Both the position numbers and the translations under genes were made by a program. A stretch of DNA of 64,000 nucleotides from Octopus sinensis. Lineage: Eukaryota. The notes under the pieces are model-generated. The model was not told where the DNA came from and made no database searches. It was given only the letters and a program-made list of their open reading frames with translations. Of this stretch, positions 1,607 through 60,527 are shown piece by piece. Position 1 is the stretch's first letter. Each line of letters starts with the position of its first letter. The stretch covers positions 61,442,001 to 61,506,000 of the forward strand of contig NC_043002.1 of NCBI RefSeq assembly GCF_006345805.1. Direction: 5' to 3'.

Positions 1607-2668
1607 TTAGTTCAGTTTTTCTAGATTAGGGAGTTCAATACCAGGTTGACGGTCCTTTATGTAAAGTATTTTTCTGTTAGTTGTCTTCTTACAACATATT
1701 TGCTTCAAGTTTTCGCGGAACATTTTACTGGCAACGAAATACAAAATAAAGTTCAAACTGTTATTAGCACAAGCTAACGTATCCAATGATAAGTAAGTCA
1801 CAGAATCCATGCATCCATTTAGTGTCATTATGAAGTAGTAAATTGACACAGGGTATGTCGTCAACAAAAATATAATATTTATAGTAAAAACTATATAAAT
1901 GCTGTTCCTCAACCGTGCTGCAGAGTTGTGCTGTAAATTTTGGCCAAGGTTTGGTCGTTTAAGTAATTTGTAAGTCATAATGATAGAGCTGATAATTAAA
2001 AAAACTGCTGGTATAAACGAATAGATTGCAACTGAAACAAGAAAAATATGTTTGTTGTCTTTTAGTAATACTATAATCGTTGCATAAATTATGCAACCGC
2101 AACAGAGAAGTGTCAACATTACAATATACGGAATGTGGGGCTTAGGGGAAATACGGCGAGAAAACGGGCTGTAAACTGCCAAGAGGCGTTCCATTGATAT
2201 AATGACTGTTAACCAGGATGAATATATATTTATAATAAAAACGATGTAAGTGAAATATATATTGGTCACAAATATTTTTATCTGATCAAAAAATTTCATA
2301 GAATGTATTATAATTCTTGGATAATTTCCCCATACTGCAAGTAAATCTACAACAAGCAGGCAAAAGAGGTATGGTGTAATATTCGACCGAGGTATTTCTT
2401 TCCTGCATAATAATCCAATAACTGCTATATTCCCGATAGTTCCAAAAATCATTAACATTAAAGAAACATATCCTATAGTGTTATTTAAAACGAATGGTGC
2501 ATAATCCAATAAGGAGCTACAGTTTGTCGTGTTGTATATGTTGCTAAATTCGTTATCAGTAAAATTTGTAAGTTTCCATTCCTTAATTTCAAAATCAACA
2601 GTTTCTGAAATATTATATTTCTTTTCTGCCATTGAAAATGTTCTATGAGAGCAGTAGTTTTCAGTCAT
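1607..2668 (-). CDS. Intronless class A GPCR, copy 1 (353 aa; FMRFamide/sex-peptide-receptor-like orphan group)
   Basis: Seven hydrophobic segments; TM1 GTIGN, TM2 LLVVDLL, TM3 SSWLTVIISMERLLAV, TM5 YSFIP, TM6 FLLTTYP, TM7 NNSLNFILY, helix 8 FRENLKQICC; several N-terminal N-glycosylation sequons. The start could be M1 or M13. Confidence 0.93.
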   Translation of the reverse strand: MTENYCSHRTFSMAEKKYNISETVDFEIKEWKLTNFTDNEFSNIYNTTNCSSLLDYAPFVLNNTIGYVSLMLMIFGTIGNIAVIGLLCRKEIPRSNITPYLFCLLVVDLLAVWGNYPRIIIHSMKFFDQIKIFVTNIYFTYIVFIINIYSSWLTVIISMERLLAVYSPFSRRISPKPHIPYIVMLTLLCCGCIIYATIIVLLKDNKHIFLVSVAIYSFIPAVFLIISSIIMTYKLLKRPNLGQNLQHNSAARLRNSIYIVFTINIIFLLTTYPVSIYYFIMTLNGCMDSVTYLSLDTLACANNSLNFILYFVASKMFRENLKQICCKKTTNRKILYIKDRQPGIELPNLEKLN

Positions 2669-3558
2669 TTGACAACTTGTAACACCGAAAGTACATTAAT
2701 GAAAACACCCAGCAATGCCTGGCCTTATCAATCTGCTCACTACTGTGACTGCTGCTTCTCGCCAGCATGATGGCGATGATGACGATGATGGCGATTATCT
2801 CGTTACTAATAAGACACTTTCCAATAAAACAAATAATGAATCGATTAATACTGATTTGTATTTCATTTACTCCAATATATGTTAGATATTTTCATTGGCT
2901 AGGCACTTGTAAAATAACGGATTTACACAGAAAAAATAAATGGAAGGACTGCACGGGTAATATACAAAAATTTCTGAATCCATTACGTTGGGTATATGAA
3001 ATATTTCATAAACCTATTTTGCTGCTACTATCGACGATGCTGTTCTCGTATTTGTAAATACTACAGCTGCTGCAACAGCTGTTATTGTTGTCTTTTATAA
3101 CCAGGCTCCAAGTCGGTCTTTGTCAATTATAATTATTCTACACACAAATACAGAGATTGTCGTGCTGATATATACTTATTGTAATACAACACTGTATCTA
3201 CCGTTTTTACCCGTACATTAATAAATAGCTTTAGTGAATATTAGCTGGAATATAAACCAGGTCGTATGACTTGCGTAAATACTTCCTATTGATTTATGGA
3301 CGTCATTTAATGACAATAGTAATACTGCACCGCCACCTACTGTTTGATATAATTTCTAACGAATGATACATCCCAAATTACTTTCATTAGTGAGTGGTAG
3401 TCATCATGTGATTTACGACAAACACTCGTAGATCCTATTATGTAGAAGCAAATCTCTAAAAAACTTAATAAGATGTTGATAGCTTTAGACAGAGATTTGG
3501 GAAGTGTATCTTTTATTAATATAAATCCTTAAATCCCTTAAAAATCTTTTTAAATGTT

Positions 3559-3592
3559 TTAGCCCGAAGGCCGCGGCCATGCTGGGGCACCA
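3559..3592 (-). mobile_element. SINE/LINE 3' tail fragment
   Basis: TTTTAGCCCGAAGGCCGCGGCCATGCTGGGGCACCAC contains the shared tail motif GGTGCCCCAGCATGGCC on the minus strand. Confidence 0.65.
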
Positions 3593-3764
3593 CTATAGTT
3601 CATAGTATTTTACATTTTATGATATGATACTCATTGACGGAATAAAATATACTAATAAACGCATTCCTTGTCATTAGTTTTGACTCTAAGGCAGAGTAAT
3701 TAGAAAACCGAACGAATTGCTGCAAAGCATTTCCTCCGTATTTTCGAAAAGAGTTCAAATAGGT

Positions 3765-3890
3765 CGACTTTGGCCATCATTCTTTCGGGATCGATAAAAT
3801 AACAGTCAAGTACTGGAATCGGTGTAATCAACTTCCCCTGCCCCTCAAAATGTGCTGCCCCGGTGCCAAATTTTGAAACCATCACCAGTT
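3765..3890 (+). mobile_element. tRNA-derived SINE body (family A)
   Basis: GTCGACTTTG...TTTCGGG.TCGATAAAATAA core, recurring at 11970, 19070, 19290, 24095 and 62480. Confidence 0.7.
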
Positions 3891-3907
3891 TCACTCCTTA
3901 AATGTAC

Positions 3908-4060
3908 AATATAATCTTATTCATAAATGGCAATTTCTGTCTGTCGATCTGTCTGTTAGCATCTCACTGCCTACACCAGTGAACCAATCGTGACGAAATT
4001 TTGCCTATATTTTAAACTAACGTCCAGTTCAATTATAGGCTAAATGAATTTCAATAAACC
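3908..4060 (+). mobile_element. Possible non-autonomous Helitron-like 5' end
   Basis: ATAAATGGCAATTTCTGTCTGTC...CCAGTGAACCAATCGTGACGAAATTTTG resembles Lep1-like Helitron 5' regions (ATAAATGCGAAAGTTTGT...GAACCGATTT..ATGAAATTTGG); recognised from memory only. Confidence 0.4.
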
Positions 4061-58255: not shown

Positions 58256-58510
58256 CTCTATCGGATTTTCAAACAGGTCAAATTGTTGGTGGTCGTATGG
58301 TAGGCGCCAGCATAATGAAAAAAATGCCCGAATATTTGCTGTATTGAAAACTGCTGTTTCGAACGTAATGACAGCATTTCAGAAAGAGGGAAAACCTCAT
58401 CATCGAAACGAAACTTCGGAAGAAAAACCAAAATTTTCAGATAGGTATCGTCGTAATCTTACGTGAATTCTTAGAAAGGACCACAAAAGCAAAGCTCCCA
58501 AAATTACACA
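58256..58510 (+). mobile_element. Tc1-like transposase N-terminal remnant
   Basis: SDFQTGQIVGGRMVGAS..VSNVMTAFQKEGK..RKDHKSKAPKIT matches the Tc1 HTH region. Confidence 0.7.
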
Positions 58511-59179
58511 CATATATATATACACATATAGATAAATATATATACATATCTTCATACATACACACACACACAAACACACACACATACACGCTCACACACA
58601 GACACAGACACACACGAACATTCACACACACACAGATATATATATATATATATATATATATATATATATATATATATATATATATATATATATATATATG
58701 TATATATATATATATATATACATATATATAGATAGATATGTATGTATATATATATATATAAATACCAGAATGGAATAATATTCTTTTAAGTAAAGTATCT
58801 AAGTAGTATATCGAAAGATTCAGCGATGTGTGTGCCTGGCAAGTGATTCGGTCTGAGCTAATTGATAGTACGAAGGTTGATACGCCAATATTAGCCATTT
58901 CTGTATATCTCTGATTTGTTAATATATGATTTCCCCCAAAACATTTATGGATCAAAATTTTATTGACTTTCACAATGGCCTGAATATCAATTTCTCTGAT
59001 CTCTGTTTAAACGTGCAGAATCATAACGTGCTATGAAACTTCAATCAGAGAGTGACCCTGAAAAAAGCCAATATTATTGTTTGTAGGATATCGGCGGTGT
59101 CTAACGCTTTTGTATCCGGGGTACTAAACGGATATTTACAAACAACGAGACAATAGCAGAAATGGCTGTGGTAAGAAGC

Positions 59180-59650
59180 TTGCTTCCCAACCACATGATC
59201 CCTGTTTCAGACTCACTGTACTACAACCTTAGGCTAATCAAAGCTTTCTGAGTGGATTTGGAAGCAAAAAGAAGCTCGGCGTATATATATATATATATAT
59301 AATATATATATATATATAATTTATATATAGAGGGCATTATACATACATGCCAGAGGGCATTATACATACATGCCACACGCTAAGAGGGACAATTAGTCAT
59401 TTCTACCAAAAATATTACTAATCCCACCGAATGCAATTTTTCAATCAGTATTTATTTGTGTGTCTGTGTTTCTTCCCCAATCATCGCTTGACAATAGAGT
59501 TTTGTATGTTTACGCTCCTGTAACTTAGTTGTTCTGAAAGAGAAAACGATATAATAATTACTAGGCTTACAAAGAATAAGTTCTGCGAGCGATTTGTTCG
59601 ATTAAAGGCGGTGCTGCAGCATGGACGCCGTCAAATGAGTGAAAGAAGTA
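59180..59650 (+). mobile_element. Composite SINE, degraded
   Basis: Head TGTGGTAAGAAGCTTGCTTCCCAACCACATG and tail GGCGGTGCTGCAGCATGGACGCCGTCAAATGAGTGAAAG. Confidence 0.7.
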
Positions 59651-59689
59651 ATAAAATAAAAGAATGCAGAAAGAGAATTTGTCCTCGGC

Positions 59690-59778
59690 GGAATTTGTAA
59701 TCAGAACGTTAAGATGGACGAAAGAACGCTAAGCATTTTGTCCGGCGTGCACACGATTCTGCAAGTTCGCTGCCTTAT
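59690..59778 (-). mobile_element. Family A SINE head at the break of GPCR pseudogene 5
   Basis: ATAAGGCAGCGAACTTGCAGAATCG..CGCCGGACAAAATGCTTAGCG..ACGTTCTGA..AAATTCCGCCGAGG. Confidence 0.7.
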
Positions 59779-60527
59779 ATTTGGAAGCAGTTTTATGAAG
59801 TAATTATTAGACGGAGGTAAACTTAGTTAGCAGGAATTACAAGTTTATTGTAATCACTGTATAAATAGTAGTTTCTGACTGCGTTGTTGAATTATGTTGC
59901 AAATGAGACTGAGGGCTGTTGGATGGAATATTCATTATTAAATAAGGATAGAAGTAATTATTATAATCACACCTGGTAGGAATGAATAAATGAAGTGTAC
60001 AGCATCCAAAGTATACGTTTAAATTTTTACAAAGCCCTTCTAGCATTGTATACCTAACAGAAACACATACATGAAACGAGAGCATTACAAGGTGAGACTT
60101 ATACCGTTCAGGAGATTAAAGTCCGGACAAGGGAGGAAAACTTTAAAAAACTCTTTCGTGAGATATGATAACAGCTATCCAAGAATACTATATACATACA
60201 GAAGAATTGACGGACCCCAAATAATTTTCAGTTTTAAATATCTGTATGAGCTATCTTAGATTGCAAAATAGTTGACAGCCATATTAAATTTGGTAAATAT
60301 ACCAAAATAGCAATGAAATCTACAAGAGCCAAACAATGGAGATACGGAACAATTTTAGTCTGACGCATCTATTTCATGAAAAATATTGCAAAAACTGTAA
60401 AATTTCGGATAGATCCAAAGGTCAATTAAATTACTGAAACATACCTTATAGTTCCAACTAAATGAATGTTTGTATCGCCTTCTATCTGGTTACTGCTAGT
60501 CCGTACGTCCATTTCTCTTTTGTTCAT
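59779..60527 (-). pseudogene. GPCR copy 5 pseudogene (paralog of copy 4)
   Basis: MNKREMD..NIHL..YVSVI*LTFGSIRNF..MK*MRQTKIVPYLHCLALVDFIAIL: TAA at 60426-28, TAG at 60369-71, a frameshift near 60235 and further stops. Homology ends after TM6 at a SINE; TM7 not found. Confidence 0.9.

Follow-up and report, generated by a model that had tools for sequence, protein, structure and literature searches.

What kind of receptors are encoded by the five co-oriented gene copies found in a stretch of 64,000 nt of Octopus sinensis DNA (contig NC_043002.1; hereafter, the window), and what signals could they detect? An earlier note, made from the letters of this DNA, had described four intact single-exon seven-transmembrane (7TM) open reading frames (ORFs) and one pseudogene, all on the minus strand, and had proposed them as a cluster of chemoreceptors. 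This gene inventory was recovered here at the same positions, and the co-oriented array held up as well, with the linkage of its first member crossing a scaffold gap. The five copies, one of them a pseudogene, are labelled G1 to G5 by rising coordinate and lie inside 59 kb as follows:

G1: 1607-2668, minus strand, intact single-ORF class A G protein-coupled receptor (GPCR), 353 aa from the first ATG (ORF listing)
G2: 34601-35494, minus strand, intact single-ORF class A GPCR, 297 aa (ORF listing)
G3: 37097-38008, minus strand, intact single-ORF class A GPCR, 303 aa (ORF listing)
G4: 56087-57013, minus strand, intact single-ORF class A GPCR, 308 aa (ORF listing)
G5: ~59819-60527, minus strand, pseudogene of the G3/G4 subgroup, transmembrane helix (TM) 1 to early TM6 (tblastn with G1-G4)

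Our results place the intact genes in a small clade of class A GPCRs, traced in octopod data only, that lacks the second extracellular loop (ECL2) and the disulfide bond anchoring it to TM3. This is the most distinctive feature of the locus, and it had been missed by the earlier note. The structural and evolutionary part of the explanation that we favour, which we regard as very likely, would run as follows: an ancestral single-exon gene was duplicated locally several times before the window species and a distant octopod diverged; a core clade deleted ECL2 and the TM3-ECL2 disulfide, which would leave an unusually open orthosteric pocket; and this clade fixed a basic residue at position 2.60 and an aspartate at 7.39 in the pocket, as well as an RPxLGQ motif in the third intracellular loop (ICL3). 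Each paralogue, keeping its own pocket residues under purifying selection, would then probably respond to a small ligand of its own. The signal would pass through the microswitches that are kept, namely D2.50, the ERx motif, P5.50, F6.44, P6.50, N7.49/Y7.53, helix 8 (H8) and a palmitoylation Cys, and coupling may also involve the RPxLGQ loop.

Class A receptors without a second extracellular loop

The placement of these genes was addressed with profile searches. All four intact genes matched the Pfam family 7TM_GPCR_Srw (PF10324) at 37.3-45.9 bits, against a gathering score of 22.2 (G1 37.3, G2 37.6, G3 45.9 and G4 37.7), the match being limited to profile positions ~190-318, which cover TM5-TM7. 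For Pfam 7tm_1 (gathering score 30.5), G2 and G4 scored above the threshold (59.5 and 36.3, respectively), and G1 and G3 fell less than 1 bit below it (29.8 and 29.6). A comparison of the family profile with PDB sequences ranked GPR139 first (E=1.4e-13) and matched distant class A receptors only; a single-sequence PDB search gave no match. GPR139 is known to cluster with the MIP/sex-peptide receptor (SPR) and with FMRFamide receptors (PMC12208981), in agreement with the FMRFamide/SPR/Srw-related placement that the earlier note had proposed. An AlphaFold2 model of G3, built from an 11-sequence family alignment (pLDDT 68, pTM 0.62), consisted of a seven-helix bundle (residues 13-45, 55-84, 96-125, 140-160, 164-196, 206-242 and 248-272) plus H8 (274-284), with an ECL2 of 3 residues. 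Foldseek searches with this model returned generic class A GPCR matches (TM-scores 0.65-0.75) and no specific nearest receptor.

Most of the class A microswitches are kept in the window proteins, namely N1.50, D2.50, E3.49-R3.50, P5.50, F6.44, P6.50, N7.49 and Y7.53, and the GN, LxxD and ER(L) motifs together with P179 and P232 are invariant or near-invariant. In H8, an F-R motif precedes one or two Cys residues, and N-glycosylation sequons are present in the N-termini. Two canonical motifs are replaced, CWxP by TTFP (T6.48 for W) and NPxxY by NFxxY (F7.50 for P). Among the 129 nearest non-family proteins retrieved by an exhaustive profile search, which served as comparison set, T6.48 was present in 112, P6.50 in 125, the N and F of the NF pair in 122 and 123, and the following Y in 126; the W of the TM3 motif was universal (129), and the E and R of the ER pair occurred in 109 and 128. 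To judge by this alignment, the T6.48 and F7.50 replacements are a superfamily variant and not a defect, because they recur in 112-123 of the 129 nearest relatives. Likewise, the SSWxTV..ER, TTxP and NFxLY motifs that had been taken as superfamily marks proved common to 109-129 of these proteins. The profile matches and shared motifs thus confirm the assignment of the predicted products of G1-G4 to class A GPCRs of the FMRFamide-receptor/SPR/GPR139/Srw-like superfamily.

The limits of the family were traced by successive searches. A word-indexed search recovered 7 homologues, and an alignment-based word-indexed search added 4 family-level proteins. The exhaustive profile search, conducted over 1.84 billion representatives, yielded a discrete set of ~24-28 representatives above ~165 bits, followed by a continuum of 2841 proteins at E<1e-10; scores drop from >165 bits within the family to <150 bits for this continuum, which is made of unnamed annelid and gastropod paralogues. 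Nameable relatives were few and came from annelids and gastropods, such as the Haliotis "probable G-protein coupled receptor B0563.6". One-to-one orthology to a named receptor outside cephalopods, including a conserved bilaterian neuropeptide receptor, was looked for in the scores of this search, in place of an explicit receptor tree, and none was found. Within the discrete set, a core clade of ~18 representatives (G1-G4 plus P0001-P0018, minus P0007) was recovered with bootstrap 100, and P0007, P0019-22, P0024, P0026 and P0033 formed a sister or intermediate group. The core family comprises ~15-18 paralogue lineages, whose traced members come from Octopus bimaculoides, from the window species, or from one octopod whole-genome shotgun (WGS) series (SRR11869384-94) of another octopod species, the contigs of which hold at least 6 core paralogues. 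P0004 corresponds to O. bimaculoides A0A0L8ICK4, and P0002, P0016 and P0017 have UniParc identifiers in the same range (2015 models); members of the intermediate group were traced to O. bimaculoides, O. sinensis and Argonauta hians.

Tandem arrays also occur outside the core clade, since the ENA contig L011 (ERZ21867824, GC 0.33) bears two co-oriented single-exon paralogues of the intermediate clade (695-1594 and 10001-10951), which are 62% identical and 8.4 kb apart. P0007 is the lone single-exon gene in its 20-kb locus.

Cys3.25, present in 125 of the 129 relatives, is found in none of the core-clade members; a Cys in the ECL2 zone is likewise present in 125 of the 129, and the ECL2 of the core clade is reduced to ~3 residues. 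In line with this, the span from the TM4 anchor to P5.50 measures 30-31 residues in the core clade versus a median of 52 in the relatives. These alignments show that the predicted core-clade receptors lost almost all of ECL2 together with the TM3-ECL2 disulfide. The loss was stepwise, since the intermediate clade retains both cysteines with a shortened ECL2 loop.

Other derived traits lie in the pocket and in ICL3. A basic residue occupies position 2.60 in 15 of the 18 core-clade sequences with a residue there, and D7.39 is found in 15 of 21; both positions are variable in the relatives, the R/K2.60 and D7.39 pair being specific to the core clade. The RPxLGQ motif, located in a short ICL3, is kept across the whole family (P in 23, L in 22, G in 25 and Q in 21 of 28 sequences) and is absent or gapped in the relatives. 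The earlier note had read RPNLGQ as a mark of G1 and G2, together with PKP.IP; both motifs are indeed present in these two copies, and only the Asn of the former is specific to them. Copies G3, G4 and G5 share MRQTKIVPYLHCL, and SSWxTV..ER, TTxP and NFxxY are also present in the window genes. The ICL3 of G4 has the sequence HPPCLGQ: Pro replaces the Arg that the family conserves in (H/K/R)RPxLGQ and that the O. bimaculoides orthologue retains, which might mark an incipient relaxation of constraint or else an altered coupling. Compared with the FMRFamide receptor, SPR(MIP), GPR139-142 and the nematode Srw proteins, the window genes share SSW..V..(S/T)xER in TM3, F..TTxP in TM6 and N..NFxLY in TM7, whereas the core clade lacks Cys3.25 and ECL2 and has gained RPxLGQ and the R/K2.60 and D7.39 pair.

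Comparable architectures exist in other class A receptors. In the melanocortin and MRGPR receptors, ECL2 is very short, the canonical TM3-ECL2 disulfide is missing and the pocket is shallow and open; MRGPRs are in addition lineage-expanded, single-exon and expressed in sensory neurons. However, these are vertebrate families without specific sequence kinship to the window genes, and they were not among the top PDB-profile or Foldseek matches; the analogy is architectural only and the resemblance would be convergent at best. Tandem clusters of lineage-specific class A receptors have already been published in cephalopods, and the loss of ECL2 and its disulfide plus a new pocket pair makes the present cluster an unusual variant of that type; it constitutes a natural experiment on a class A receptor without a lid.

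The core clade also appears to be under-annotated, its genes being effectively missing from gene models. No RefSeq models for it turned up, the window proteins were absent from a collection of 15 billion proteins, and the expression and annotation tables S2 and S3 of Ritschard et al. 2019 (PMC6408891) list neither A0A0L8ICK4 nor A0A0L8HN02, the two family members from O. bimaculoides with UniProt accessions. The clade therefore seems to have been missed by at least one cephalopod GPCR survey and by current gene models.

Orthology, age of the copies and selection

Each intact gene has a one-to-one octopod orthologue with strong bootstrap support:

G1: orthologue P0008, 72% identity, bootstrap 100
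G2: orthologue P0009, 65% identity, bootstrap 100
G3: orthologue P0001, 76% identity, bootstrap 99
G4: orthologue P0004 (O. bimaculoides A0A0L8ICK4), 90% identity, bootstrap 100

Furthermore, the O. bimaculoides fragment P0017 matches G3 at 93% identity, and the P0007 orthologues of O. bimaculoides and O. sinensis are 92% identical, level with the matches of G3 and G4 to O. bimaculoides; the window thus comes from an Octopus species near to O. bimaculoides but distinct from it. The cephalopod origin surmised from the letters is borne out by these matches. Start and stop positions of the window genes are kept in the orthologues, with one adjustment: the first ATG of G1 gives 12 residues more than P0008, whose start falls at the position of Met13 of G1. 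Since the orthologue begins there, the true start of G1 is probably Met13 at 2632, for a product of 341 aa. The N-terminus of G1 is long and carries 4 N-glycosylation sequons.

Amino acid identity among the paralogues is 62% for G3/G4, 50% for G1/G2 and 45-47% for the remaining pairs. Of the two subgroups proposed in the earlier note, that of G3, G4 and G5 was recovered (bootstrap 90), whereas the grouping of G1 with G2 was weak (bootstrap 34). The order along the minus strand is G5, G4, G3, G2, G1, with G3 located 1.6 kb upstream of G2, and adjacent copies are the closest kin, which fits sequential local duplication. Synonymous divergence (dS) was 0.45-0.58 between orthologues and 0.76 between G3 and G4, and it was saturated (1.2-2.3) for G1/G2 and for cross-group pairs. 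On the evidence of the tree and of these distances, all duplications of the array predate the split from the distant octopod. Similarity between copies stops within tens of bases of the coding sequence, as fits the age of the duplications. A sensitive tblastn search (E<=10) found no further copies or fragments in the window. The birth-and-death dynamics invoked in the earlier note were therefore overstated: with one-to-one orthologues at dS ~0.5, the youngest intact duplication at dS 0.76 and ~15-18 lineages in total, a small, stable family with slow tandem duplication appears to fit better than rapid birth-and-death.

The pseudogene G5 is an old copy, given its ~72% nucleotide identity to G3 and likewise to G4. 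Its tblastn match is spread across two frames, with several in-frame stops (e.g., ...FFMK*MRQTKIVPYLHCL) and at least one frameshift near 60204-60241, just ahead of the TM3 SSW motif; its 3' end is truncated at early TM6, TM7 is missing, and a SINE-like (short interspersed element) repeat at 59455-59666 lies ~150 bp beyond the end of the homology. Two alternative origins were considered and discarded. O. bimaculoides has an additional paralogue, P0002, but G5 is not its orthologue, the identity being 40-57% versus 90-93% for true orthologues, and a duplication of a two-gene unit (G3+G2 and G5+G4) was rejected, as G2 shows no corresponding kinship to G4.

The four intact ORFs measure 362, 316, 310 and 306 codons from stop to stop, and the window is AT-rich (GC 0.28-0.45). 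In 100 composition-preserving block-wise shuffles, the longest ORF was 217 codons (mean 140); the four ORFs are thus not chance products of AT-rich DNA, as their lengths exceed those of every shuffle. Orthologue dN/dS (omega) was 0.26-0.41 (G1 0.28-0.37, G2 0.40 and G3 0.26-0.28) and 0.32 for G3/G4, and at orthologous loci the coding sequences were 76-84% identical, versus 65-73% with indels in the alignable flanks. The proteins were further partitioned by model topology into a ligand-facing half, made of the loops and outer TM halves, and the remaining cytoplasmic half. Omega was 0.43-0.55 in the former in every pair and 0.17-0.35 in the latter; with the three orthologue pairs concatenated, it was 0.465 in the outer half (bootstrap 95% confidence interval 0.34-0.62) versus 0.224 in the inner half (0.17-0.29), and the order was reversed in 0 of 300 replicates. 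The conserved TM core with divergent extracellular segments that the earlier note had described was borne out too: between G3 and G4, the N-terminus (identity 0.33), ECL1 (0.45) and ECL3 (0.20) all fall below the TM helices (0.63).

Since omega is significantly below 1 in both halves, the genes are functional. It is highly improbable that they are untranscribed or decaying relics whose ORFs are still undisrupted in a cluster being lost. Such decay could be read from the heavily degraded state of G5, from the missing Arg of the G4 loop and from the absence of the genes from annotated proteomes, but the constraint was measured in three orthologue pairs at dS ~0.5, ORFs of 297-353 codons are kept in DNA whose shuffles never exceeded 217 codons, and the orthologues share their start and stop positions.

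The distribution of substitutions within the TM bundle is consistent with ligand diversity. Over a set of 34 generic pocket positions, conservation between orthologues equalled that of other TM positions (79% vs 80%), whereas among paralogues the pocket differed more (57% vs 46%, Fisher p=0.003). At 11 TM sites (3.29, 3.36, 3.37, 6.51 and 6.55 among them), the residue is fixed within each orthologue pair, with at least 3 states among paralogues. A separate ligand for each paralogue would be expected to leave just such a pocket, variable among paralogues and kept between orthologues.

Purifying selection shows that the receptors have a function but not what it is, and they could also be non-sensory and non-neuroendocrine, acting in sperm or egg recognition, in immune or microbial-metabolite sensing, or in constitutive, ligand-independent signalling, a reading that we consider quite improbable. 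With ECL2 and its disulfide lost and both W6.48 and P7.50 replaced, activation could follow an altered mechanism, and one cephalopod-specific class A group is testis-dominated (PMC6408891). Against this, W6.48T and P7.50F are common to the whole superfamily, including its ligand-gated receptors, the paralogue-specific and orthologue-kept pocket residues argue for ligand binding, and no particular tissue is indicated.

Candidate roles of the receptors

The window genes would most likely serve to detect water-borne cues from outside, whether in the olfactory organ, the lips, the suckers or the skin. With this candidate chemoreceptor role included, our explanation as a whole has slightly less than an even chance of being right, the sensory role being its most tentative element. 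The chemosensory reading is plausible and is favoured by the lineage restriction, the tandem single-exon layout, the presence of a pseudogene, the raised outer omega, the pocket divergence and the invisibility to annotation; absence from RefSeq-type annotation and from a published expression survey is what would be expected of rarely expressed genes. Tandem lineage-specific class A GPCRs of lophotrochozoans are regarded as candidate chemoreceptors (PMC11886862). In cephalopods, such clusters number 3-146 per species and include tandem layouts and pseudogene classes (Nath et al. 2025, PMC11886862), and cephalopod-specific class A groups have been defined by Ritschard et al. 2019 (PMC6408891). 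The window genes share with these expansions the lineage-restricted class A clades, tandem arrays, pseudogenes or truncated copies and heterogeneous pocket residues, the expansions being likewise proposed as chemoreceptors. They depart from the definition of Nath et al., which stresses that one-to-one orthologues are lacking between the compared species, in that G1-G4 each have a one-to-one octopod orthologue (bootstrap 99-100); such orthologues may be compatible with an expansion at the level of the order.

Several observations weigh against a chemosensory role. The family is small and its one-to-one orthology is stable across dS ~0.5, unlike the fast-turnover, large chemoreceptor repertoires; many GPCR families, peptide receptors included, evolve faster in their extracellular half; and omega exceeded 1 only in segments of 10-21 codons, not significantly. 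The structural model is of moderate confidence only (pLDDT 68). Logan contigs evaluated as transcripts were set aside, as they end in microsatellites or SINEs and are collinear with the genome, which identifies them as WGS contigs. Moreover, contact chemosensation in octopus uses the nAChR-like chemotactile receptors (CRs; PMC11526382), cephalopod-specific class A expansions are expressed in testis, gill and other non-sensory tissue (PMC6408891), and an FMRFamide-receptor-like expansion of gastropods is expressed in the prostate and albumen gland (PMC11589774).

The CRs (van Giesen 2020, Allard 2023, reviewed in PMC11526382) resemble the window genes in being octopus-expanded, intronless and tandem, and are candidate or proven chemoreceptors; however, they are pentameric nAChR-like ion channels, whereas the window genes encode 7TM GPCRs, as only 7TM Pfam families match and the model is 7TM, the fold and mechanism being unrelated. 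The gastropod candidate chemoreceptors or FMRFamide receptor-like proteins (Aplysia, Cummins et al. 2009, PMC2700072; Lymnaea, Koene et al. 2024, PMC11589774) belong to the same kind of molluscan rhodopsin-type expansions in genomic clusters, and their function is likewise disputed between a chemosensory and a peptide-receptor one. Their families run into the hundreds (~450 in Lymnaea) versus the ~15-18 octopod core lineages, and the Aplysia AcCRs are likened here by description, not by sequence.

The same dispute applies to the window genes, whose products could instead recognise signals from within the body, be they RFamide-type, MIP-type and other lineage-specific peptides or small hormones, and act in nervous, reproductive or other internal organs, with the paralogues splitting related ligands. 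We hold this to be possible, if rather unlikely. The superfamily includes bona fide peptide receptors, namely FMRFaR and the SPR/MIP receptor, with GPR139 as the nearest solved relative (PMC12208981); the homologous Lymnaea expansion was read as FMRFamide-like receptors with differential expression in prostate and albumen gland (PMC11589774), and class A groups specific to cephalopods show expression in the testes, the gills and nervous tissue (PMC6408891). The stable one-to-one orthology across octopods and the small family size point in the same direction, and D7.39, conserved and acidic, could serve as the contact for a basic residue of a peptide. On the other hand, no one-to-one orthologue appeared outside octopod data. 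Conserved neuropeptide receptors are generally expected to be under strong constraint, and the dN/dS of 0.26-0.41 is high in comparison. ECL2, which in most peptide GPCRs forms much of the peptide-binding lid, is deleted, and the pocket residues diverge among paralogues; the melanocortin receptors show, nevertheless, that a short or absent ECL2 does not exclude peptide ligands. If these genes do encode internal peptide receptors, they would mark an octopod-specific signalling system.

Returning to the chemosensory reading, a more specific version of it, which we consider unlikely, is that the core clade is an overlooked octopod-specific, ECL2-less family supplying the G-protein-coupled odorant receptors of the olfactory organ or of other distance-chemosensory epithelia. 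Here, R/K2.60 and D7.39, lying in a wide-open pocket, would recognise free amino acids, amines or betaine-like cues by their charged groups, with side-chain specificity set by the pocket residues that vary. Octopus touch-taste is accounted for by ion-channel CRs. The present GPCR family, compact, clearly delimited, for the most part unannotated and with paralogue-specific pockets, offers a short list of ~15 genes. Whether the receptors are sensory or internal, the genes merit addition to cephalopod annotations.

Scaffold gap, repeats and other features of the window

The array is crossed by a single assembly gap, and the window also contains repeats of two SINE-like dispersed families (72-84% identity):

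Assembly gap: 23920-24019, no strand, 100 N, intergenic between G1 and G2
SINE-like family, first set: 12792-13061, 16042-16312, 54358-54539 and 59455-59666, repeat copies
SINE-like family, second set: 19187-19356, 24020-24206 and 62422-62629, repeat copies

G1 and G2 are 21.2 and 10.6 kb away from the gap, respectively, and the gap interrupts no copy, so that no reading frame is at issue. How G1 is linked, spaced and oriented relative to G2-G5 depends on the scaffold join, and a further copy could be hidden in the 100 N. The left flank of the gap is of low complexity, and the right flank opens inside a dispersed SINE-like repeat, whose copy at 24020-24206 is 83.5% identical to 62422-62609, with another copy at 19187-19356; similar repeat ends terminate the WGS contigs of the other octopod species. 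An ORF spanning the gap (23797-24276) was rejected as a gene, being made of low-complexity sequence plus Ns, translated as X residues.

Just right of the gap, a degenerate non-LTR retrotransposon (long interspersed element, LINE) occupies 24400-28900 on the minus strand, with an endonuclease at 27296-27622 (PF14529) and a reverse transcriptase at 25652-26161 (PF00078). At GC 0.45, no other patch of the window is richer in GC. Another LINE fragment with reverse transcriptase was found at 44546-46413 (reverse transcriptase at 44881-45438, a weak RVT_1 match), and the DNA at 45960-46413 is related to 25867-26347. Neither tRNA nor Rfam features were found in the window.

Between G3 and G4, a foldback of ~2.5 kb (40782-43336) has outer arms of (AAT)34 and (TTA)47 and inner inverted arms at 41050-41569 and 42580-43110 that are 80-91% complementary. 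It could represent either a transposon of the foldback type or an inverted duplication. Lastly, (TA)n microsatellites of up to ~600 bp occur at 36347-36548, 51815-52427, 53336-53569 and 62965-63242, one of them in the 1.6-kb spacer between G2 and G3, and the long (TA)n tracts yield spurious long 'YIYIYI' ORFs.

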